Shown one piece after another: positions 12,365 through 51,832 of a DNA stretch of 64,000 nt. Each line of letters begins with the position of its first letter. Position 1 is the stretch's first letter. Both the position numbers and the translations under genes were made by a program. The stretch lies in the sequence record LR535910.1; one strand, 5' to 3'. Under the pieces are notes generated by a model, which saw nothing but the letters and a program-made list of their open reading frames with translations, was not told the origin of the DNA and made no database searches.

Positions 12365-13642
12365 ATGGCAAACTTTGTAAAAAGTAAACTCGCCCGCGAG
12401 TCCGTTGAAGCTACCGGCGACGTAATCGACGGTCTGAGCAACGTTGAACCGGCAGAAGAGAACATCGACGTTCAGCTGGCAGAAGTTGCGTCTATCGACG
12501 GTCAGCTGGAACAGCTCGATGGTGACCAGGAAACTCTGGCTGCTGATACCGAGCGTACCGAAGCTGCTATCGACGCTGCTGACGAAAAAATCGAAAACGG
12601 TGAAGAGATGCCTGAAGAAGCCATCGCTCACACCGAAGTGGCGCAGGAATCTATCCGTAAACGTTGGGCTATCGATCGTACCAAACTGGCACGCGAATCT
12701 TATCGCCGTGGCCGTGGCATGACCAAAGCAGCTCAGGAAGGCTGGAAAGAAACCCTGAAAGATCTGTTCAAGCGCTTCGTTGAACTGTGTAAAGCAGTTA
12801 TCGCGAAAGCGAAAGAGCTGAAACTGAAATACATCAACGTTGGTAAGTCTGCACAGAAACGTGCGAAAGCTTACCAAGAGATGCTGCGTAAGCTCGGTAA
12901 GCAGAAGAAAGAAAACATCTCTGGCGGCTTTATTAGCAAACTGTCTATCGAAGGCGACTTCGATGTGGCCAACTCCATCGCTATCGCGAAAGAGCTGACC
13001 GGCGGTAAAGCGAAAGACGCTATCAACAAGCTGTCCTCTCAGGCGTCCGAATCTGCTGTAGCGATCACCAAAACCGCAGAAGGTACTGCAACGGCTGCTA
13101 AAGGCGCTGTTGATGTTGCCCTGTTCGGTACCGCTGCTAAGAAACTGCGCACCCTGCCGCAGTTCGAAGATGGCGAAGGCGGTCAGAAAGTTCTGGCACT
13201 GCCAGGCAACGCCTATGTGCAGATCGGTAGCAAAACTCTGGCCGGCGGCCAGGACTTCACTGCGGTGGCGTTCCTGTCAACTGGCGACTCTACCGACACG
13301 AAAGAGATTGCTACCCCGGCAATTACCGCACTGGCGTCTGCAGCAACCGCTCTTGATGCGATCGGTAAAGGCTTCGAGAAAGTGCTGCAGGACTTCCGCT
13401 CCTATGACGCCGATGTTGAGAAACTGGAGCAGGCTGCTAGCAAAGCTGCTGCTGCCCTGGATAAATCCAACGACGAAGGCGAGTGGGAAGCACTGCGTAA
13501 TGCACGTACTGCAGCCGACCAGGCTGTGCGTAACTACCAGACTCTGAACCGTGCCGTGGCGCATGTTGGTAACACTGTTATCAGCGGCCTGAACGGTTAC
13601 ATCGGTGCTGGTATCGGCGCGTACGAAAAGTCTAAAGCTTAA
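12365..13642 (+). CDS. Abundant inner head protein, phiKZ gp93 family (SPN3US gp53-like)
   Basis: 425 aa; acidic propeptide with ARES, AQES, ARES, AQEG sites; strong high-expression codon bias; paralog of next gene. Confidence 0.85.
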   Translation: MANFVKSKLARESVEATGDVIDGLSNVEPAEENIDVQLAEVASIDGQLEQLDGDQETLAADTERTEAAIDAADEKIENGEEMPEEAIAHTEVAQESIRKRWAIDRTKLARESYRRGRGMTKAAQEGWKETLKDLFKRFVELCKAVIAKAKELKLKYINVGKSAQKRAKAYQEMLRKLGKQKKENISGGFISKLSIEGDFDVANSIAIAKELTGGKAKDAINKLSSQASESAVAITKTAEGTATAAKGAVDVALFGTAAKKLRTLPQFEDGEGGQKVLALPGNAYVQIGSKTLAGGQDFTAVAFLSTGDSTDTKEIATPAITALASAATALDAIGKGFEKVLQDFRSYDADVEKLEQAASKAAAALDKSNDEGEWEALRNARTAADQAVRNYQTLNRAVAHVGNTVISGLNGYIGAGIGAYEKSKA

Positions 13643-13719: not shown

Positions 13720-14979
13720 ATGGCTAACTTTGTAAAAAGTAAACTCGCGCGTGAATCTGTCGAAGGTACAGGTACTGTCGTTCCGGACGGTATCGAGCTG
13801 CCGGCTGAGTCCGTAGAAGGTACTCTGGCTGACATCGAGCACGACACCAAACCGATCGACCAGCTGGATGCTGAAGCAGATGTGCTGGCAGAAGACGGCG
13901 ACGAAACCGACGCGCAGCTGGAAGCAGTCGATGCTGCTGAAGCTGCTGCTGACGGTGAAGGTGAAGATGGCGAAGAGCCAATGGAAGTGGAAGAAGATAT
14001 GCCTGACGAAGCTGCTGAGCAGCTGGACGTTGCGCAGGAATCTATCCGTAAACGTTGGGCATTCGACCACCGCGTAAGCGTTGCGCAGGAATCTTACGGT
14101 GCACGTAAGCGCCGCCAGGTTGCTCGTGAAAGCCTGTGGGACGACATCAAAGCGTTCCTGCAGCGCATCTACGACTGGCTGAAAGAACAAGGCCGTAAGG
14201 TTAAAGACCGTTGGCTGAAGTTCAGCAACCAGGGTAAATCCATTCAGGCGCGTGCTAAGAAATATGACGCTGCTCTGCGTGGCCTGGGCAAGCAGAAGAA
14301 AGACACCGTTAGCGGTGGGTTCATTAAGAACCTGACCACCGGTGGTAAGTTCGTCGGTGACGACATCAACGTCCTGAAAGGCGTTCTGTCTTCTATCGGC
14401 AGCATCTACGGTGAGCAGGATGCAGTTGTTGCAGCCGCTACCACTATGGTTGGCGCAGTTGAAGGCGGCAAACTGGGCTCTGGCTTTGCAGCAGCGGTTA
14501 ACAAAGCAACTGCAGGTAAAGCGGGCGAAGTTCAGCTGCTGGGCAACCAGATCGGTAAAGCCGAAGTGAAAGTGAACGGGGATGACCTGGAAGCTTCCTT
14601 CAATGTTATCGACGCCGAAGGTAGCGTAGAGCAGTCTGTTTCTACTCCGTCTGCTCAGACTCTGTCTTCCCTGGTTGCGTTCTTCAACCAGCTGGGTAAA
14701 GCAGTCGAAGAGAACGTGAAAGCATACCACAAAAATAACCAGGCTCAAGAGCGTTACGAGCAGGCTATTGAGAAACTGCTGAAACGTATCGACGGCGTGA
14801 AGATCGACGACAACGCAGAACTGACTTCCAACGTCCGTGTTGCACGTCGTGCAATCACCGTTGCGAACCAGTACATCTCCTGGACCGAACGTTGCGTTGC
14901 AACCGGCCAGAAAAACCTGATCGCCGGCGTTAACGGCTACATCAGCGCTGGTATCGCTGCGTACGAAAAGTCTAAGTAA
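13720..14979 (+). CDS. Abundant inner head protein, phiKZ gp93 family (SPN3US gp54-like)
   Basis: 419 aa; same first 15 aa (MANFVKSKLARESVE) as the preceding gene; repeated AQES/ARES sites. Confidence 0.85.
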   Translation: MANFVKSKLARESVEGTGTVVPDGIELPAESVEGTLADIEHDTKPIDQLDAEADVLAEDGDETDAQLEAVDAAEAAADGEGEDGEEPMEVEEDMPDEAAEQLDVAQESIRKRWAFDHRVSVAQESYGARKRRQVARESLWDDIKAFLQRIYDWLKEQGRKVKDRWLKFSNQGKSIQARAKKYDAALRGLGKQKKDTVSGGFIKNLTTGGKFVGDDINVLKGVLSSIGSIYGEQDAVVAAATTMVGAVEGGKLGSGFAAAVNKATAGKAGEVQLLGNQIGKAEVKVNGDDLEASFNVIDAEGSVEQSVSTPSAQTLSSLVAFFNQLGKAVEENVKAYHKNNQAQERYEQAIEKLLKRIDGVKIDDNAELTSNVRVARRAITVANQYISWTERCVATGQKNLIAGVNGYISAGIAAYEKSK

Positions 14980-15050: not shown

Positions 15051-15075
15051 TTTCAGATATATATTACCTAGGTGA
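15051..15075 (+). promoter_or_regulatory. Early (virion RNAP) promoter
   Basis: TTTCAGATATATATTACCTAGGTGA, identical to 23555-23579; contains the TATATTAC core known from phiKZ early promoters. Confidence 0.85.
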
Positions 15076-17818: not shown

Positions 17819-17839
17819 GCGTTTTAGGCCAGTGATATG
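17817..17839 (+). promoter_or_regulatory. TTGC-N15-TATG putative middle/late promoter
   Basis: TATG 17836-39 matches the phiKZ late start-site consensus; variant upstream box at the same spacing. Confidence 0.5.
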
Positions 17840-17859
17840 ACTACAACGAGGGACAGCTA

Positions 17860-22547: not shown

Positions 22548-22559
22548 TCATCTAGTATG
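22537..22559 (+). promoter_or_regulatory. TTAC-N15-TATG putative middle promoter
   Basis: TTAC 22537-40, TATG 22556-59. Confidence 0.6.
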
Positions 22560-22590
22560 ACCCGTAAGTAACCTTAAGGAAAATATTGCA

Positions 22591-23554: not shown

Positions 23555-23579
23555 TTTCAGATATATATTACCTAGGTGA
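23555..23579 (+). promoter_or_regulatory. Early promoter
   Basis: TTTCAGATATATATTACCTAGGTGA, identical to 15051-15075. Confidence 0.85.
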
Positions 23580-44143: not shown

Positions 44144-44782
44144 ATGCAATTACAATTTCGTCAACGGTCTGTACTACTACCGTTTAGCGCTATATTAGGT
44201 TCGTTTACCAAAATGCTGTCTGTGGATTTTATTGCAGCTGAGAAAGAAGCGCTGTTATTGGCGGCAGTCGAAGAAGTATTGTGGGAGGCGTTTTACGTAG
44301 TGCCGTTTCGTAGCTGCTTAAACGCCCCGTATGTTGAAGGGCAGTTTGTCAGCGCGCTTTCCGCTGCAATTACCAAACGTAAACTAAATGCCATGGCACA
44401 CGTCAAAGAGATCACCGCGCAACGAGGACGGATATTCGCTACCGTCAGAAATGTGTTAATTAAAGAAGGGTTTCTTGCAGATGCGTTAGGTCCCGAAGTT
44501 CCTTGGGAACCGGGTCATCCGCCGCGTCAGTTTGACCACGGGTACAAGTTAAGTATAATTATGCCACGCGGTAAGCGTGACGTCTCATTGGGGAAATGGT
44601 TACAGATAAGTTGGGTTCGTCCTACTATCGATTGGCAAGAAATGTCGGTCAATCGCTATCTGGAACACCTGGCAAAAACACCGGCACAGTTTCACCGTTC
44701 AACAATCCTGCCGCTACACATGCTGTTAAAACCGTCCCTGTCATTGGCAGAAGCCAGATACCTGCTTAGTGGAGAGAAGTGA
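44144..44782 (+). CDS. Hypothetical protein
   Basis: 212 aa; AAGGA RBS; overlaps GNAT start. Confidence 0.85.
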   Translation: MQLQFRQRSVLLPFSAILGSFTKMLSVDFIAAEKEALLLAAVEEVLWEAFYVVPFRSCLNAPYVEGQFVSALSAAITKRKLNAMAHVKEITAQRGRIFATVRNVLIKEGFLADALGPEVPWEPGHPPRQFDHGYKLSIIMPRGKRDVSLGKWLQISWVRPTIDWQEMSVNRYLEHLAKTPAQFHRSTILPLHMLLKPSLSLAEARYLLSGEK

Positions 44783-45264
44783 TGCTTGTTATTAATGTGG
44801 TCGAGGATAAGATTCCCGCGAATGTTTATCCTGAACTGGTTGAATGGGTACGCGACTTAAACAGTATCCGCGAGGAGCCTATTAAACTCACGATGTTTGT
44901 TGAGGATGATATCGTGCGGGGAATCATGGCATGGGAACCTGGCCATTTGGTCTATATGGTTGTGCCCGAAGAATCGCGGCGGGGCGGTGTCGGCAGATTT
45001 ATGCTTAAGTATCTTCAGCAGAACTCCGATCGTAAACACATCAGCTGTCGTGTTCACCCGACCAACATTCCCGCGCTAGGATTCTTTCACCAACAAGGCT
45101 TCCAGATTGACCGATGGTATATTGCTGCTGACGGCCAACGGTATTTTCGTATGACGAACTACAATGTTATTTCGTCACACACGCCGCCGGAGGAAAAGCT
45201 TTTAACTCATTACGCTGAAAGCGTTCCCATTTTTCTTTCGATGGCAGAAGGTCATTTCGTCTAA
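44779..45264 (+). CDS. GNAT-family acetyltransferase
   Basis: YMVVPEESRRGGVGRFML (motif A RxxGxG) and VHPTNIPALGFFHQQGF (motif B). Confidence 0.88.
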   Translation: MMLVINVVEDKIPANVYPELVEWVRDLNSIREEPIKLTMFVEDDIVRGIMAWEPGHLVYMVVPEESRRGGVGRFMLKYLQQNSDRKHISCRVHPTNIPALGFFHQQGFQIDRWYIAADGQRYFRMTNYNVISSHTPPEEKLLTHYAESVPIFLSMAEGHFV

Positions 45265-45760: not shown

Positions 45761-46150
45761 ATGATGCGTGCTGTATTAGCTGTGTTTATAGTCTGCGTTA
45801 CTGCGCCAGTAAACGCCTTTACCATTCAGGACTTCCCGCAGTATAAACCGATGTGGGAAACCGACGCACCTGTAAAATTTAGCGACAAAGATGAACCAGT
45901 CGTGACGGTGGAAAATGGTGAGTTTGCCGTGGTTAACTACGGACGTTCTGAACTGTGTCCAGGCGGTGGCTTTTATCTCGTTAACACAAAGCGCAAGACG
46001 TACCAGCCAATAGATGCGGGTACGTGTTCGTCGAAAGTTAAAGCGACAATTGCCCCGTCAGTACGAACACACTGCAGAGTTAATAACCTACGGTTAACTT
46101 TTTGGGTAGGTAAAGAAATTTCCGCACGGTATCCTTTGTACGATTATTAA
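45761..46150 (+). CDS. Predicted exported protein
   Basis: 129 aa; signal peptide MRAVLAVFIVCVTAPVNA; three Cys in mature part; GAGGA RBS. Confidence 0.8.
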   Translation: MMRAVLAVFIVCVTAPVNAFTIQDFPQYKPMWETDAPVKFSDKDEPVVTVENGEFAVVNYGRSELCPGGGFYLVNTKRKTYQPIDAGTCSSKVKATIAPSVRTHCRVNNLRLTFWVGKEISARYPLYDY

Positions 46151-46158
46151 ACACAGCG

Positions 46159-46195
46159 TATAGGGGCTTCGGCCCCTATACTGTTTATTATTTTC
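46159..46195 (+). terminator. Intrinsic terminator
   Basis: TATAGGGGC-TTCG-GCCCCTATA plus T-rich tail. Confidence 0.85.
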
Positions 46196-46240
46196 CTGTG
46201 AAGTATTATGACCCCCTTAATCAAATACCAGGAGCGAGGC

Positions 46241-46858
46241 ATGTCTTTTGTTATTGACTTTAACCACCATCATAGTCAAACCTTGCTCGATTTAGTCAAT
46301 GCTTTTAATGCTGAAACCGTTTATACGCCCCTGACCACAGAACGTATCCGTGTGGAGAGTTATGGTCCACCGGAACCGGACGGTCGTGTAAGTGCTTTGC
46401 TGACTAATAAGAGTAAGCCAGATGACTATGTGGTTGTGCGTTACCGCAAATTGAGCTTAAATGATATAATCACATTGGGACCTGAACATCTCACGTGGTT
46501 TGATTTGTCGAAAGGTAAACCGGCCGATTTGCGCGTATGGTCTGAACCTGCAATGGCCAGTTTTGAATCGGCGTGTGCAGAACGCGGCATCGTTGTAAGT
46601 AAGGCGTGGGAAAACCCCGCGCAATGCCACGTAGAGTACGACATCCTGACCGATCGATACATCCTCGTCTATGAATGTGAATCGTTTGTTTACGAATCAC
46701 GCACACGTATTACGCTACCGTACCATATCGGCCAAGACTTAACCAAGACAACGCTGCCTGGTCTGGAATACGACTTGGCTGGTTTCTGGGGGCGTAAGCT
46801 GTTAGAAGAAGTGACTATCACGAAGCTTAACGGTTTTCGTTATCGTGTGTTTGTTTAA
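46241..46858 (+). CDS. Virion structural protein, paralog of 41413 and 63335 (SPN3US gp91-like)
   Basis: 205 aa from ATG 46241 (GGAG/GAGG RBS); TATG at 46207 is more likely a late start site than a start codon; ends RKLLEEVTITKLNGFRY. Confidence 0.7.
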   Translation: MSFVIDFNHHHSQTLLDLVNAFNAETVYTPLTTERIRVESYGPPEPDGRVSALLTNKSKPDDYVVVRYRKLSLNDIITLGPEHLTWFDLSKGKPADLRVWSEPAMASFESACAERGIVVSKAWENPAQCHVEYDILTDRYILVYECESFVYESRTRITLPYHIGQDLTKTTLPGLEYDLAGFWGRKLLEEVTITKLNGFRYRVFV

Positions 46859-46863
46859 GACAC

Positions 46864-46904
46864 TACCCTCGCCCGTTTAGCGAGGGTAGGTATTTATTTT
46901 TTTC
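46864..46904 (+). terminator. Intrinsic terminator
   Basis: TACCCTCGC-CCGTTTA-GCGAGGGTA plus T-tract. Confidence 0.8.
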
Positions 46905-46939
46905 TTACGAATCGTCCACTCCGTATAGGAGGTAAGTCC

Positions 46940-47539
46940 ATGAAAAAGATTTATAAAATTGCGGTAATCGGTTCTCGGAAGACTGATGAAGATACCATGT
47001 CTGAAATGTACATGCGATTGTTACGTGGGTTTAATGCGCTGCACGCCAAAGATTACACGATTCATTTTTCTTCTGGCGGCTGCTGGTGTGGTCCAGACCA
47101 ATTGCAATTCCGATTTGCCCGACAGTGGGCGAATACAATCGACCAGAACACTGGCAAGAAAGTGGTGTGGGATGATGAGTTCATTTGTTACCTACCCGAT
47201 GAGAAAAAGCTCTGGCTCAAGAAACAGAATCCCAACGTAGAGTTCCGTGTAATCCCTCAGGATGACCGCTATCGTGAGATAGTAGGTAAGCTTCATCCCG
47301 CGCCAGAAAAGCTCCAGGAGTTCGCCTGGGCGCTTCATGGCCGTAATCTGAATATAATTATGGGCGATGATTTAGCAACGCCTGTAGACGCAGTTTATTA
47401 CTCTGCGCCTTTAGATAAACAAGGTAATCCGACCGGCGGTACTGCCATGGGCGTGAAATACGCTAAGCAGTGTGGTATTCCTTGTTACCACCATGCGCTT
47501 GAAGGACATCTGTGGCTTGAGAGCTTGTGCTTATTATGA
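46940..47539 (+). CDS. SLOG-superfamily (DprA/Smf-like) nucleotide-binding protein
   Basis: KIAVIGSR, FSSGGCWCGPD, RN at GRNLNII, GGTAMGVKYAKQCGIP; GGAGG RBS. Confidence 0.75.
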   Translation: MKKIYKIAVIGSRKTDEDTMSEMYMRLLRGFNALHAKDYTIHFSSGGCWCGPDQLQFRFARQWANTIDQNTGKKVVWDDEFICYLPDEKKLWLKKQNPNVEFRVIPQDDRYREIVGKLHPAPEKLQEFAWALHGRNLNIIMGDDLATPVDAVYYSAPLDKQGNPTGGTAMGVKYAKQCGIPCYHHALEGHLWLESLCLL

Positions 47540-47569
47540 CCACGTTGCCTTTAATCAGAGGTCGCTATT

Positions 47570-47842
47570 ATGCAAACTACCAGTTTAGCTCGTCGTTTGT
47601 GGGAAGCATTCTTCCCTACGCCGTCAAAACCGATTAAGAAGGTGACTAGCCTTCGCTTGTTCCCAGGCTCCGAGGATGAGTTCTTCGATTACCTGGAACG
47701 CCACGGTTTTGATTCGAAAGTCGCACCACAAGAAAATGACCCAATTCAGACAGTTTACACCACGCCGGATACGGGAGAGATATTTGCCTTGTGTGTTCGA
47801 TGGCCACATCGCAACTACTACTATACTTTGACGCAGATGTAA
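47570..47842 (+). CDS. Hypothetical protein
   Basis: 90 aa; GAGG RBS; TATG at 47535 upstream. Confidence 0.8.
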   Translation: MQTTSLARRLWEAFFPTPSKPIKKVTSLRLFPGSEDEFFDYLERHGFDSKVAPQENDPIQTVYTTPDTGEIFALCVRWPHRNYYYTLTQM

Positions 47843-47852
47843 GGAGCAGGGG

Positions 47853-48986
47853 ATGTCGACGCTCGATTTAGATTTAGAAGTCCTGACTGACGACCACGAT
47901 CGCCTGGTCGCACTCGAAGGTCTGGGAGTTAAGCCCGACTTCCCTGCGGTTTGCGCGATCCGTCAGCGTTGGTGCTTAACCGACGACGGTGAAGATATGT
48001 TGGTTGCTCGTGAATCGCGCGAAGCGATGGAGCGTGCTCAGTTTATGACTGATACTGACCCGCGGGCTGGCATCCATCGCGCAGCAGGGCGCATTACTGC
48101 GAAAGCTGTTAAAGGTACTGGAAAGTTAGTGGGTGCTGGACTAGGTGCAACCGCAAAGGGCGCGGGTAAACTTTCGAAAAAGCTCGCATTACGCTTTTAC
48201 GATTTCGCGGAAGCGCTAGCGAAAGAACAAGCCGACCGTTTGAAAGAAATAACTTCGAAAGCTGCTTTCATGGAACGTAAGCTCAATAAGCTTAAAACGC
48301 GAATGTCGCTGCTAGATAACCACAAAACACTCGCTGCGGTCGACGTTCACACGAGTAGCTGGACGTCTAAAATTTGCTTTGAAGATCGACCCGATTTTGA
48401 AGCGTGTGTTAAGTTTTCTAAACAAACAAATGCGTACGAAGGCGTCGTGCAAAAGTACACGGTTTACACACGCACCGCTCTGAAGAAAAGCAAAGCATTC
48501 GAAGGGCCGGGCTTAAAACAAATCAGCAAGTCCACGAACTGGGCAGTTAAGCGTGCTGCTGGGTTGCTTGGCATCATCGATCCCTTTAAAAAGGTGGAAG
48601 CTTTTCCTGTCCCTGGAAATATCGTTGTGGTTGAGCACTATAGTGGTAAGGTCAGTTGGGCAATTGCGCGTGACGGTGAGTATGGTGAAACCATTAAATC
48701 GCTGGATATGCATCAGTGTGGGAAAGCAATAGAGGCTGTGGAAGCACTTATCAAATCTATTGCTGCACGTGGAACAAAGAACCGTGTTGTGGGCTACACC
48801 GGCATTTACGAAGAAGTGGAAGCGATGAAGTCCGAGCTTAAGAACCTAGAAGGGGATGAGCTGAAGGAGGCCACGTTACGTTACCGTAATGCAATGGCGA
48901 TGGAAGACGCTTTCACCACGGCGTTGGTACGTGTGGCGGAGGGTCTAATGGAGTGGACGAAGCAATCGTTGGCTGAGGTGAAATGA
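47853..48986 (+). CDS. Divergent third paralog of the inner head protein family
   Basis: 377 aa; ALEG and ARES sites; TSSWTSKICFEDRPD, FPVPGNIVV and ALVRVAEGLMEW align in order with SGGFISKLSIEGDFD, ALPGNAYV and VGNTVISGLNGY of the 12365 protein. Confidence 0.7.
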   Translation: MSTLDLDLEVLTDDHDRLVALEGLGVKPDFPAVCAIRQRWCLTDDGEDMLVARESREAMERAQFMTDTDPRAGIHRAAGRITAKAVKGTGKLVGAGLGATAKGAGKLSKKLALRFYDFAEALAKEQADRLKEITSKAAFMERKLNKLKTRMSLLDNHKTLAAVDVHTSSWTSKICFEDRPDFEACVKFSKQTNAYEGVVQKYTVYTRTALKKSKAFEGPGLKQISKSTNWAVKRAAGLLGIIDPFKKVEAFPVPGNIVVVEHYSGKVSWAIARDGEYGETIKSLDMHQCGKAIEAVEALIKSIAARGTKNRVVGYTGIYEEVEAMKSELKNLEGDELKEATLRYRNAMAMEDAFTTALVRVAEGLMEWTKQSLAEVK

Positions 48987-49450
48987 TGAAAATTGTTTTT
49001 GTCACCAAGCCCAACTCTCCGTATGGAAAGAAATACTACGCGGACTTGTTAGGACTACACAACAAGTTATACGACGATCAGAAAATAAAACTTGCCGACT
49101 TAAACGGTCGTGAAGGGTTTAATCAAATCTCAAAACTGGAGGAGGTTTGGGGTGAAGGTACGCTGTGCGCTTGCGCCGTTGATGACCGTGGTGTGGCTGT
49201 TGGCTTCATCACCTTTGGCTACACCAAAAAGGGACAACGTTTCCTCTGGGTATATAACTTTTTTGTAGATGAATCGGTTCGTTCACAAGGCGTTGGTCAT
49301 GAACTGATCGAAGCCGTAGAGAACTATGGCAAATCAAAAGGTTGCGCGTGGATGCAGCTTAACGTGCTCGGTAATAACGACCGTGCTATTGCGTTTTATG
49401 AACGTTTCGGATTCCGAACTGAATACCAGGATATGGTAAAGGAGCTTTAA
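48983..49450 (+). CDS. GNAT-family acetyltransferase
   Basis: NFFVDESVRSQGVGHELI and QLNVLGNNDRAIAFYERFGF are canonical motifs A and B; ATGA coupling. Confidence 0.93.
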   Translation: MMKIVFVTKPNSPYGKKYYADLLGLHNKLYDDQKIKLADLNGREGFNQISKLEEVWGEGTLCACAVDDRGVAVGFITFGYTKKGQRFLWVYNFFVDESVRSQGVGHELIEAVENYGKSKGCAWMQLNVLGNNDRAIAFYERFGFRTEYQDMVKEL

Positions 49451-49451
49451 C

Positions 49452-50060
49452 ATGGTAGCTGTCCGCAGCGTGCCACATCAGACTGGCTCGCGATATACTT
49501 TTTGTGTAAAGCGTTTTGGGGCAAGAAATCGCCCTGGTTGGAAGGTGGTACGTGCGATGGGACAGTTCTGGCAATTACCGCCCGGCACGTTAAAATATTT
49601 TTCAGTAGACAGAATAGCCCAGTTCTTAAATGCGGCTGACCCAAGTCAACGGTCCAGTTTTATAGCAGGGGTTGTTTGTCGTCCCGATGGGAAAACACGC
49701 GATGCAACCACACGTGGAATTTACTGGACAGGACAGAACGCGTTTCAGGTTGGCTTACCTTGCCTGAAGTGTGAAGTGACGCCGTTTAATGGCCCCTATG
49801 CCGATGCGTACTTCACCGGTATCTTTGTGTCGTTCCCAGACGACCCGTCTTTAAACTACTTTCTATCGGTAGACAAAGACGTCAGTATTGATACCTTCTA
49901 CAAATACTTGTTGTTTTACAGCCGGTATATCCGCGTGACTCCTGTGCATGAAGATTGGTATTATAAAAATCCCTTGAACTATGGGAGGGACAGGAGACTA
50001 GAAGGATGTTCTATCGAGAGCTTCAACTCTGTACCGCAGCGCTCCATGGCGCTAATGTGA
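49452..50060 (+). CDS. Hypothetical protein
   Basis: 202 aa; AAGGAG RBS. Confidence 0.8.
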   Translation: MVAVRSVPHQTGSRYTFCVKRFGARNRPGWKVVRAMGQFWQLPPGTLKYFSVDRIAQFLNAADPSQRSSFIAGVVCRPDGKTRDATTRGIYWTGQNAFQVGLPCLKCEVTPFNGPYADAYFTGIFVSFPDDPSLNYFLSVDKDVSIDTFYKYLLFYSRYIRVTPVHEDWYYKNPLNYGRDRRLEGCSIESFNSVPQRSMALM

Positions 50061-50377
50061 GCAAGAACGGGGACCTGGAAGACGTCGCGCAAGCCTTACG
50101 GGCTGTGTCGGAGGTTGACCAGGTCGACATCGACGCTAAGTATTTAGGCGGCGGTGTAAAGCGTATTCAGTTGACCGTGCGAGCCAAACATGGCAGCTGC
50201 TCGTTACATTTTCGAGTCAGTGCGGATTATTTCCTGGTACTGCGCTCCACATTCAGTCACGATGGTCGGACTCACCGGGTTCGGTGGATGCACGACATTA
50301 CTAAATTTGGCTACCCGCTTGCAGAACAACGTAAAGTCGTGCATGACTTTATGGCTGCAGTCGTTGCGGGGTTTTAA
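50057..50377 (+). CDS. Hypothetical protein
   Basis: 106 aa from GTG 50057 overlapping the upstream stop (GTGA). Confidence 0.7.
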   Translation: MSKNGDLEDVAQALRAVSEVDQVDIDAKYLGGGVKRIQLTVRAKHGSCSLHFRVSADYFLVLRSTFSHDGRTHRVRWMHDITKFGYPLAEQRKVVHDFMAAVVAGF

Positions 50378-50386
50378 GGGGAGACT

Positions 50387-50986
50387 GTGATGTCTGAGAT
50401 GATTCTCGATTCACTGTTTTTGATTACGGTTGCAAACATCAATAAAAACGGCAATCTTCCAGAATACGTAGACATAAGTCGTCATGGCTTTAAGCGTCGT
50501 TATCAAATCGGTAAGGTACTAGAGATTGCCTGTTTAGTAACGAACATGCGTAGACCGGTGGAAGGCTGTAGCGTTAAACATGCACAGATGATACTCGGGC
50601 GTGCTATTTCAGAAGTACGTCGTAAGCGTCGTCGTGCACCATATCGCTTTTATCCTAACTCCACCAAACAGGTGGTCGGTGAGGGGGAAGGTGTGGTTGA
50701 TTTGCGCGAGGCCAGTTGCAATGTAGGTGGTATTGCACGTGACTGGTTAATGAGCATTATCAGTAAGCATCCACGTACGCCTACACCGCAAGAAGGACAG
50801 GCGGTACTCGCACTTATGCGTAAGACCCATTTGGTGATTACTGACACACCAAACCAGGCAGCACGAATGCAGCACTATTTAGCATGTCGTGGATTTACCA
50901 CACTTGCAGTACCTTCAGAATACGCAGCTGATATTAAACTTCCGACAGTTCCCGAGTGGTCTGAACCGAAAGTTGATCATCAGTGA
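50387..50986 (+). CDS. Hypothetical basic protein
   Basis: 199 aa; GGGAG RBS; RRKRRR patch. Confidence 0.8.
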   Translation: MMSEMILDSLFLITVANINKNGNLPEYVDISRHGFKRRYQIGKVLEIACLVTNMRRPVEGCSVKHAQMILGRAISEVRRKRRRAPYRFYPNSTKQVVGEGEGVVDLREASCNVGGIARDWLMSIISKHPRTPTPQEGQAVLALMRKTHLVITDTPNQAARMQHYLACRGFTTLAVPSEYAADIKLPTVPEWSEPKVDHQ

Positions 50987-50991
50987 GTTAT

Positions 50992-51032
50992 ACCCACTCC
51001 TTCGGGAGTGGGTCGACTCTATTCTTTTTTTT
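50992..51032 (+). terminator. Intrinsic terminator
   Basis: ACCCACTCC-TTCG-GGAGTGGGT plus T-tract. Confidence 0.85.
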
Positions 51033-51722: not shown

Positions 51723-51763
51723 GTACCCCTCTTACCTTCGGGTAAGAGGGCATTGTCTTTTTT
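51723..51763 (+). terminator. Intrinsic terminator, duplicate of 25485-25512
   Basis: GTACCCCTCTTACC-TTCG-GGTAAGAGGG. Confidence 0.88.
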
Positions 51764-51807: not shown

Positions 51808-51832
51808 TTTCAGATATATATTACCTTAGTGA
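51808..51832 (+). promoter_or_regulatory. Early promoter
   Basis: TTTCAGATATATATTACCTTAGTGA, 2 mismatches from 15051/23555 copies. Confidence 0.85.

Follow-up and report, generated by a model that had tools for sequence, protein, structure and literature searches.

How do proteins that lack a targeting peptide enter the heads of phiKZ-like phages? These giant phages hold tens of megadaltons of capsid-internal protein, most of it without a known function, and this question for the field is one on which two adjacent + strand genes in a 64,000-nucleotide stretch of sequence record LR535910.1 (the window, to which all plain positions refer) have a bearing. The first gene (47853-48986) encodes a 377-amino-acid protein and the second (48986-49450) a 154-amino-acid acetyltransferase of the GNAT superfamily. 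A megablast search with positions 46900-50100 returned Salmonella phage SPFM13 (LR535910.1) at 100% identity over the same coordinates, and SPN3US, a Salmonella phage of the genus Seoulvirus, at 96% identity; the source phage, SPFM13, is an SPN3US-type giant Salmonella phage of that genus. In SPN3US the two genes are gp94 and gp95, names that we also use for the homologues studied here, and the proteins of the two phages are 98% identical. We find that the pair ties a recognisable, head-detected enzyme to a dedicated member of an internal head protein family, and that it probably carries this enzyme in the capsid.

What kind of protein is gp94? A first-pass annotation of the window, made from the sequence alone, had aligned it block by block with the products of two other + strand genes, the homologues of gp53 (12365-13642; PF12699, 259 bits) and gp54 (13720-14979; PF12699, 193 bits). 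Both are paralogs of gp94 that match PHROG 2497 and encode abundant internal head (ejection) proteins, described in SPN3US as the abundant 'paralog family A' ejection proteins (PMC5694885). Pairwise BLASTP between gp94 and these two proteins was not significant (E = 0.03 and 0.19, respectively), and PF12699 scored 19.8 bits on SPFM13 gp94, under its 27-bit cut-off, so the case for homology depends on profiles and structures. PHROG 2497, 'internal head protein', was matched by gp94 at 8.5e-87 and by the 12365 and 13720 proteins at 2.3e-151 and 7e-138. An hhalign comparison of the gp94 family (nine orthologues from five genera) with the gp53/gp54 family (12 orthologues) gave a 97.05% probability and an E value of 7.7e-11 over 320 columns, almost end to end. 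Furthermore, when PF12699 was run on five related genomes, the gp94 orthologues of Derbicusvirus scored above its cut-off (EarlPhillipIV, 44.4 bits; CR5, 34.7 bits), with those of Wellington and phiEaH2 slightly under it.

The AlphaFold 2 (AF2) model of gp94 is of moderate quality, with a predicted local distance difference test score (pLDDT) of 71.8 and a predicted template modelling score (pTM) of 0.70. A Foldseek search with this model against the viral structures in BFVD returned 79 matches at E ≤ 1e-3, the named ones being virion/internal head or uncharacterised proteins of phiKZ-like jumbo phages, from sources that include 201phi2-1, PhiPA3, Psa21, RSF1 and Ea35-70. Nothing in the PDB was matched at the same threshold and, judging by this model, the internal head family of gp94 is without a solved relative. 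Taken together, the profile and structural comparisons confirm that gp94 is a true but diverged paralog of gp53 and gp54, and the kinship proposed in the first-pass annotation holds up, with a significance that pairwise comparison did not provide.

The same annotation called this third paralog hidden, a description that fits the SPN3US papers searched, which give family A only two members: two were counted in 2017 (PMC5694885), and Table S6 of the 2023 study leaves gp94 outside the family (PMC10052503). It does not fit the databases, where the label 'internal head protein' is already in use in RefSeq (NC_027402) and in PHROG-based annotations, and where RefSeq calls the neighbouring gene 'acetyltransferase'. 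Across the main texts of PMC5105663, PMC7411985, PMC5694885 and PMC10052503, gp94 is mentioned once, in PMC10052503, and term searches of these four main texts found no mention of 'acetyltransferase' or of gp95, nor of 'GNAT' where that term was searched.

The architecture of gp94 resembles that of gp53 and gp54. Residues 1-54 (47853-48014) form an acidic, propeptide-like N-terminus with an isoelectric point (pI) of 4.2, and residues 55-377 (pI 9.5; 48015-48986, with the stop codon at 48984-48986) the predicted mature, head-resident body, in which a Gly/Ala/Lys-rich linker is followed by a basic α/β domain; the propeptide and mature part of gp53 have pI values of 4.4 and 9.3. The linker is disordered in the model (pLDDT < 50 at residues 45-103). 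The prohead protease of SPN3US, gp245, cleaves after AXE motifs (PMC10052503), of which gp94 has ALE (20-22) and ARE (52-54), as the first-pass annotation had seen, and AME (58-60), slightly beyond the propeptide-like segment. Among 14 orthologues A20, L21, E22, V51 and E54 are invariant. The hhalign comparison places the gp94 N-terminus on the distal part of the gp53 propeptide and pairs IRQRW...VARES of gp94 with SIRKRW...LARES of gp53, from which the motifs IR(K/Q)RW and (L/V)ARES emerge. Table S6 of the published analysis has 'gp245?' for gp94, calling cleavage 'possible', and the text reports peptide coverage C-terminal to motif-conforming residues (PMC10052503); we consider that gp94 is probably cleaved by the protease at ALE, ARE or AME. 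The gp94 row of that table gives 'ARE-51', and in the SPFM13 and SPN3US-type sequence the ARE ends at residue 54 (A52-R53-E54); the former is probably a numbering slip.

The neighbouring gene product, gp95, is by sequence an intact canonical GNAT, with acetyltransferase activity predicted, in agreement with the first-pass annotation. It retains the acetyl-CoA motif, scores 65 bits against PF00583 (Acetyltransf_1; cut-off 20.7) and matches PHROG 3810 at 2.3e-59. Its motif A, R99-S-Q-G102-V-G104 (R-x-x-G-x-G), is invariant among 12 orthologues, as are N131 and Y138, and its AF2 model has a pLDDT of 94.3. The top Foldseek match in the PDB is B. halodurans BH1408 (4f6a; E = 3.3e-11, template modelling (TM) score 0.81), which is uncharacterised; the other nearest structures are AAC(3)-I, spermidine/spermine acetyltransferases, AAC(6')-Iy and the polyamine acetyltransferase DpA, and the sequence matches comprise diamine acetyltransferases, RimI, Ard1 and YpeA. 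No curated NCBIfam equivalog that would assign gp95 a substrate was reached (best score 45 bits, against a 124-bit cut-off); since its nearest structures are enzymes that acetylate polyamines or aminoglycosides, together with a Bacillus GNAT that is uncharacterised, the substrate may be a small molecule as readily as a protein. We also considered a GNAT toxin-antitoxin module of the TacT, AtaT or ItaT type, and rejected it, as the upstream gene encodes a 377-amino-acid internal head protein and no TacT, AtaT or ItaT chains occur among the PDB matches.

At the junction of the two genes, the TGA stop of gp94 (48984-48986) is overlapped by two in-frame ATG codons, at 48983 (ATGA) and 48986 (TGATG, a 1-nt overlap). 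Within the end of gp94 lies GAGGT (48975-48979, + strand), the Shine-Dalgarno sequence of the GNAT gene; its GAGG is 4 nt from the first ATG and 7 nt from the second. The first-pass annotation had described an ATGA overlap; the ATGA is present at 48983-48986 and the genes do overlap, but the start annotated in both GenBank and RefSeq is the ATG at 48986. We favour this second start, because the published intact N-terminus (P1' = K) fits a protein that begins MK... and GAGGT is better spaced for it. With either start, the two genes look tightly coupled.

Are both proteins in the head? Published mass spectrometry of SPN3US, from replicate runs on doubly CsCl-purified virions and on tailless heads (PMC10052503), stands here for the 98%-identical SPFM13 proteins; virion mass spectrometry of both proteins was among the checks proposed in the first-pass annotation. 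In Table S2, gp94 has 53, 49 and 42 peptide-spectrum matches (PSMs) in wild-type virions (144 in total) and 35, 36 and 30 in heads (101), a normalised head/wild-type ratio of 0.98, and gp95 has 39, 38 and 46 (123) and 29, 29 and 39 (97), a ratio of 1.11, with coefficients of variation of about 10-18%. By the criteria of that study both are classed 'Head', at similar low levels, and gp95 was also detected in its gel-slice experiment. Taking either the portal (12 copies) or the capsid protein (1615 copies) as the standard for gel-slice PSMs per kDa yields crude estimates of ~4-24 copies of gp94 and ~5-34 of gp95 per head. Packaging looks selective, because a nearby second GNAT, gp88, unlike gp95, has no entry in the consulted portion of Table S2. 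According to Table S6, the N-terminus of gp95 is intact (P1' = K), lacks the motif and is unlikely to be cleaved, and neither protein is given a predicted function (PMC10052503). We also rejected the idea that gp95 is a T4-type cargo with its own cleavable N-terminal targeting peptide, given this intact N-terminus, the lack of the motif and the position of its sole AXE (AVE, 110-112) inside the fold.

The association of the two genes is strongly conserved. In all six annotated genomes, phiEaH2, Wellington, ChrisDB, Huxley, EarlPhillipIV and CR5, the gene immediately after that of the internal head protein encodes an acetyltransferase; these genomes represent four genera in addition to Seoulvirus. 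When IMG/VR was scanned with the gp94 alignment, 17 loci were found, in 14 of which tblastn placed a GNAT immediately downstream; the remaining three are Derbicusvirus genomes, and the RefSeq records of that genus (CR5 and EarlPhillipIV) have at the gp95 position a diverged acetyltransferase that still belongs to PHROG 3810. Adjacency therefore extends to all the related loci examined, in five named genera and unclassified IMG/VR contigs. The junction overlaps by 1, 4 or 29 nt in Seoul-, Wellington- and Erskinevirus-type loci and has a 2-12 nt gap in Machinavirus.

The pair also stays adjacent despite tandem duplication, GNAT insertion and changes in the upstream genes. In phiEaH2 (L003:1451-2440) and Wellington (L004:1442-2440) a tandem second gp94-like gene lies upstream of the copy that abuts the GNAT, and this extra copy is without the Gly/Ala/Lys-rich linker and keeps the ALE and ARE/AGE motifs. 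In Escherichia phage vB_EcoM_Lh1B an extra 164-amino-acid GNAT paralog, 34% identical to gp95, sits between gp94 and gp95 (L041:1507-2001), a layout that recurs in EC001, JN03 and Salmonella phage 1252, accounts for a length difference of ~461 bp among the megablast matches and suggests that the cargo position of the locus is expandable. In Derbicusvirus the upstream genes differ, with the DprA gene and a small open reading frame (ORF) lost. A weak GNAT homologue (30% identity) also occurs in Serratia phage Moabite, but not beside an internal head protein, so the pairing appears specific to the SPN3US/Erwinia/Cronobacter clade. Conserved adjacency and overlap, read together, support a functional pair.

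How might such a pair work? gp94 is a low-copy, diverged internal head protein of the phiKZ type and, like gp53 and gp54, most likely enters the prohead by its acidic N-terminal propeptide. The protease gp245 would then remove the propeptide at AXE (E22, E54 and/or E60), leaving a basic body of ~35 kDa in the capsid. Both proteins would be produced jointly during late infection, from a promoter of the TATG type. The 17.6-kDa, propeptide-less gp95 would be carried into the prohead with gp94 as its adaptor; because only gp94 has a propeptide, a link between the two would imply piggy-back loading. The pair would be delivered into the next cell with the DNA, and gp95 would acetylate its substrate there, by analogy with the PF12699 proteins of phiKZ, most of which (gp93, gp95 and gp97) are injected with the genome (bioRxiv 10.1101/2024.03.24.586471).

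The homology, the intact catalytic motifs, the overlap, the conserved adjacency, the head location of both proteins and the uncleaved gp95 N-terminus are established; binding of gp95 by gp94, gp94-dependent packaging, late timing, ejection and the substrate are what we infer. We give the explanation as a whole, with gp94 loading a co-made and co-delivered gp95, an even chance of being correct, and the passage from two proteins that are both in the head, always adjacent and usually overlapping to the statement that one loads the other is itself close to evenly balanced.

Several points weigh against it. Ejection, which we propose by analogy, is not to be assumed, because another PF12699 protein of phiKZ, gp162, stays in the head (bioRxiv 10.1101/2024.03.24.586471). 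Packaging without a dedicated neighbour is possible, because 42 SPN3US head proteins are reported to be uncleaved by gp245 (PMC10052503). In Derbicusvirus, 52-54 nt and a terminator-like hairpin separate the two genes, so translational coupling is not universal; the extra GNAT of some Seoulviruses loosens strict one-to-one pairing; and stoichiometry based on PSMs is crude. The Derbicusvirus hairpin is GC-rich with a T-run, at L006:3470-3550 in EarlPhillipIV and L007:3272-3350 in CR5, where other genomes have an overlapping junction.

A stronger version takes the locus for a two-part delivery device, in which a minor internal head paralog would serve as propeptide adaptor and its body would carry a GNAT that is injected and modifies a host or early target, protein or polyamine, before phage expression. 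We regard this as tentative and on balance doubtful. If it were true and general, each of the many unexplained internal head paralogs in phiKZ-like phages could serve as the adaptor of a specific enzyme cargo.

Against a loading function of any kind stands the view that the two proteins are packaged independently, gp94 as a minor structural variant and gp95 through some other contact, such as the gp53/gp54 mass or the paralog-B proteins, their adjacency reflecting inherited order and shared late expression. Indeed, the neighbourhood is syntenic as a block (DprA-like gene, small ORF, internal head protein, GNAT, gp96-98, thymidylate kinase), which makes adjacency alone weak evidence, and both the 42 head proteins without protease-cleaved targeting peptides and the hairpin between the Derbicusvirus genes fit this view. 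However, adjacency survives duplication in phiEaH2 and Wellington, GNAT insertion in Lh1B and upstream loss in Derbicusvirus, stop and start codons overlap in three clades, gp94 and gp95 have similar PSM levels, and the neighbouring GNAT gp88 has no entry in the consulted portion of Table S2; on this balance we think independent packaging unlikely, if still a serious competitor. That gp95 is in head preparations by accident, as a contaminant or a randomly trapped late protein, is suggested by its low PSM counts, but its presence in three of three replicates of both doubly CsCl-purified virions and tailless heads, its head/wild-type ratio of 1.1, its detection in gel slices and its Head class under the published criteria make this extremely improbable.

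Two further views concern the substrate. gp95 could act on small molecules or on phage components instead of host proteins, perhaps with the head as the site of action, its targets being polyamines (spermidine or putrescine, of capsid or host) or, while the head matures or afterwards, the lysines and new N-termini of the internal head proteins. Spermidine/spermine N1-acetyltransferases, DpA and aminoglycoside acetyltransferases are among its nearest structures, diamine acetyltransferases are among its sequence matches besides RimI, Ard1 and YpeA, and the bodies of the internal head proteins are lysine-rich and basic. Yet GNAT fold neighbours predict substrates poorly, no curated NCBIfam equivalog cut-off is reached, a sealed, DNA-filled capsid has no obvious supply of acetyl-CoA, and 'acetyl' is absent from the main text of the mass spectrometry paper (PMC10052503), all of which leaves this view rather improbable. 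The first-pass annotation had pointed instead to acetylation as an anti-CRISPR mechanism, as in AcrVA5, whose target is Cas12a. The idea that gp95 is an anti-CRISPR like AcrVA5, or some other acetyltransferase against host defences that arrives ahead of phage transcription, draws on the shared GNAT superfamily and on a head location that would allow action before gene expression, and on nothing more specific: AcrVA5 is not among the 39 PDB sequence matches at E ≤ 0.01 or the top Foldseek matches listed, searches that included no direct pairwise comparison. To our knowledge, Cas12a is not typical of Salmonella or Erwinia and would not be expected as a target here, and jumbo phages that form a nucleus already have protection from CRISPR systems that target DNA. 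The GNAT is strictly conserved in phages that infect Salmonella, Erwinia, Cronobacter, Escherichia and Proteus, which is more in keeping with a core role in infection than with a counter-defence specific to one host. We therefore judge this reading very improbable.

The explanation in which gp94 loads gp95 calls for joint late expression, and the region upstream of the pair is compatible with it. Late promoters of phiKZ have the form TATG, with the G as position +1 (PMC4666361). The first-pass annotation had noted a bare late-type TATG before the unit; the TATG is there (47535-47538), but it is not bare, being part of a conserved string, TTATTATGACC (47531-47541, + strand), a candidate late promoter of the type used by the non-virion RNA polymerase (nvRNAP), with its start site. 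TTATTATGACC is kept across four named genera and the window, and it shares bases with the Leu-Leu-stop codons that close the DprA-like gene; phiEaH2, Wellington, ChrisDB and Huxley have in common the string TTATTATGA(C/T), in which both Leu codons are always TTA. In Derbicusvirus, GATATGTAT comes after a terminator and is about as far from the start of the internal head protein gene. WTATGACY is not enriched in the window (7 found against 6.15 expected), and TATGAC on the + strand, 15-60 nt upstream of a start, accounts for 4 of 14 sites against 0.63 expected (P ~0.003, a post hoc comparison). Past the candidate promoter, the first strong terminator-like hairpin on the + strand (51727-51750) has a 10-bp stem and is the likely end of the unit, which would accordingly run from gp93 to about gp99. 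Four transcriptomic runs with a ~96%-identical phage cover all of 46000-51000, as contigs that carry no start site, strand or level. Late expression of the gp93-gp99 unit is, on these signals, plausible.

Other promoter-like strings occur elsewhere in the window. TATGAC(C) precedes the starts of gp91, a tail protein gene (46207-46212), and of the 22591 gene (22556-22561) by 31-32 nt, and the 17860 start (17836-17841) by 21 nt; two of the three sites directly follow terminator-like hairpins, and all three are candidate late promoters of the same type as that before gp93. A different string, TATATTACCTAGGTGA, occurs twice exactly and once with 2 mismatches (0.01 expected by chance), at 15060-15075, 23564-23579 and 51817-51832, all intergenic and upstream of + strand genes; these copies resemble phiKZ-type early promoters, and a related GATAGATATTATCT is found upstream of the 30434 and 31238 starts.

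The gp94 gene lies ~33 kb downstream of the 13720 gene, and the first-pass annotation was right to place it among accessory genes, its surroundings including a second acetyltransferase, a DprA-like gene and a thymidylate kinase. That second small GNAT, the gp88 homologue of the window (44782-45264; PHROG 7861), is 3.7 kb upstream of gp95. The first gene past the candidate promoter is the homologue of gp93 (47570-47842, + strand; 90 amino acids, PHROG 8146), and a small ORF occupies its position in Seoul-, Erskine-, Wellington- and Machinavirus relatives, a likeness by position alone. The next gene after the pair is the gp96 homologue (49452-50060, + strand; 202 amino acids, PHROG 9255), followed by that of gp97 (50006-50377, + strand; PHROG 8535). 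The consulted portion of Table S2 has no entry for gp93 or gp96 and classes gp97 as Head (PMC10052503). gp96 and gp97 overlap by 55 nt in different frames, an arrangement kept in relatives; the GTG at 50057, which shares bases with the stop codon of gp96 (GTGA), offers an alternative start for gp97 and could be the true one. In sister SPFM records (LR535903, LR535911-LR535913 and others; SPFM5, 12, 14, 15, 1, 6, 7 and 8) the locus is matched in fragments, up to 40 pieces at 99% identity, and such short-piece matches suggest indel-ridden assemblies, not true gene disruption.

Head-packaged injected enzymes, the PF12699 family and the RefSeq labels are already known. In the SPN3US papers searched we did not find it stated that gp94 is a third family A paralog, that the GNAT is a genuine head component, or that the two form a conserved coupled unit whose targeting/cleavage region is on the non-enzymatic partner only; a literature search on ejected virion acetyltransferases of jumbo phages gave no result. 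Since SPN3US has amber-mutant genetics and established virion mass spectrometry, both cargo loading and the role of an injected or head-resident enzyme at the onset of infection are directly testable.

Set beside known systems, gp94 has the near full-length homology, the acidic AXE-bearing propeptide with a basic body and the head location by mass spectrometry of gp53, gp54 and gp93, gp94, gp95, gp97, gp162 and gp163 of phiKZ, a phage that, like those of the SPN3US type, also has low-copy internal head paralogs (its gp94 and gp163). It differs from the main family in an N-terminus ~45 residues shorter, roughly 70-fold fewer PSMs than gp53, its distance of 33 kb from the main genes, a score below the Pfam cut-off in SPFM13 and a GNAT gene that is always next to it. 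gp95 shares its fold (TM 0.7-0.8), motif A and a length of ~150-170 amino acids with small bacterial GNATs (BH1408, 4e0a/4f6a; YpeA; RimI/Ard1; SSAT/SpeG-type enzymes; AAC(3)-I; AAC(6')-Iy), and unlike them it is phage-encoded and virion-resident, with only 15-24% identity to them and no curated cut-off reached. AcrVA5 is, like gp95, a phage-encoded GNAT, to which we found no specific proximity in sequence or fold, and we know of no report that it is packaged in virions. The closest parallel in concept is phage T4, whose internal proteins and Alt are packaged in the head and injected, and have a capsid targeting sequence at which the prohead protease cuts. T4 and the gp94-gp95 pair have in common the concept of an enzyme or effector that is kept in the head alongside the DNA, and a short protease motif ending in Glu; in T4, however, the targeting peptide is on the cargo itself, whereas in SPN3US-type phages the N-terminus of gp95 is intact and without a motif, and the propeptide is on its neighbour, gp94, only.

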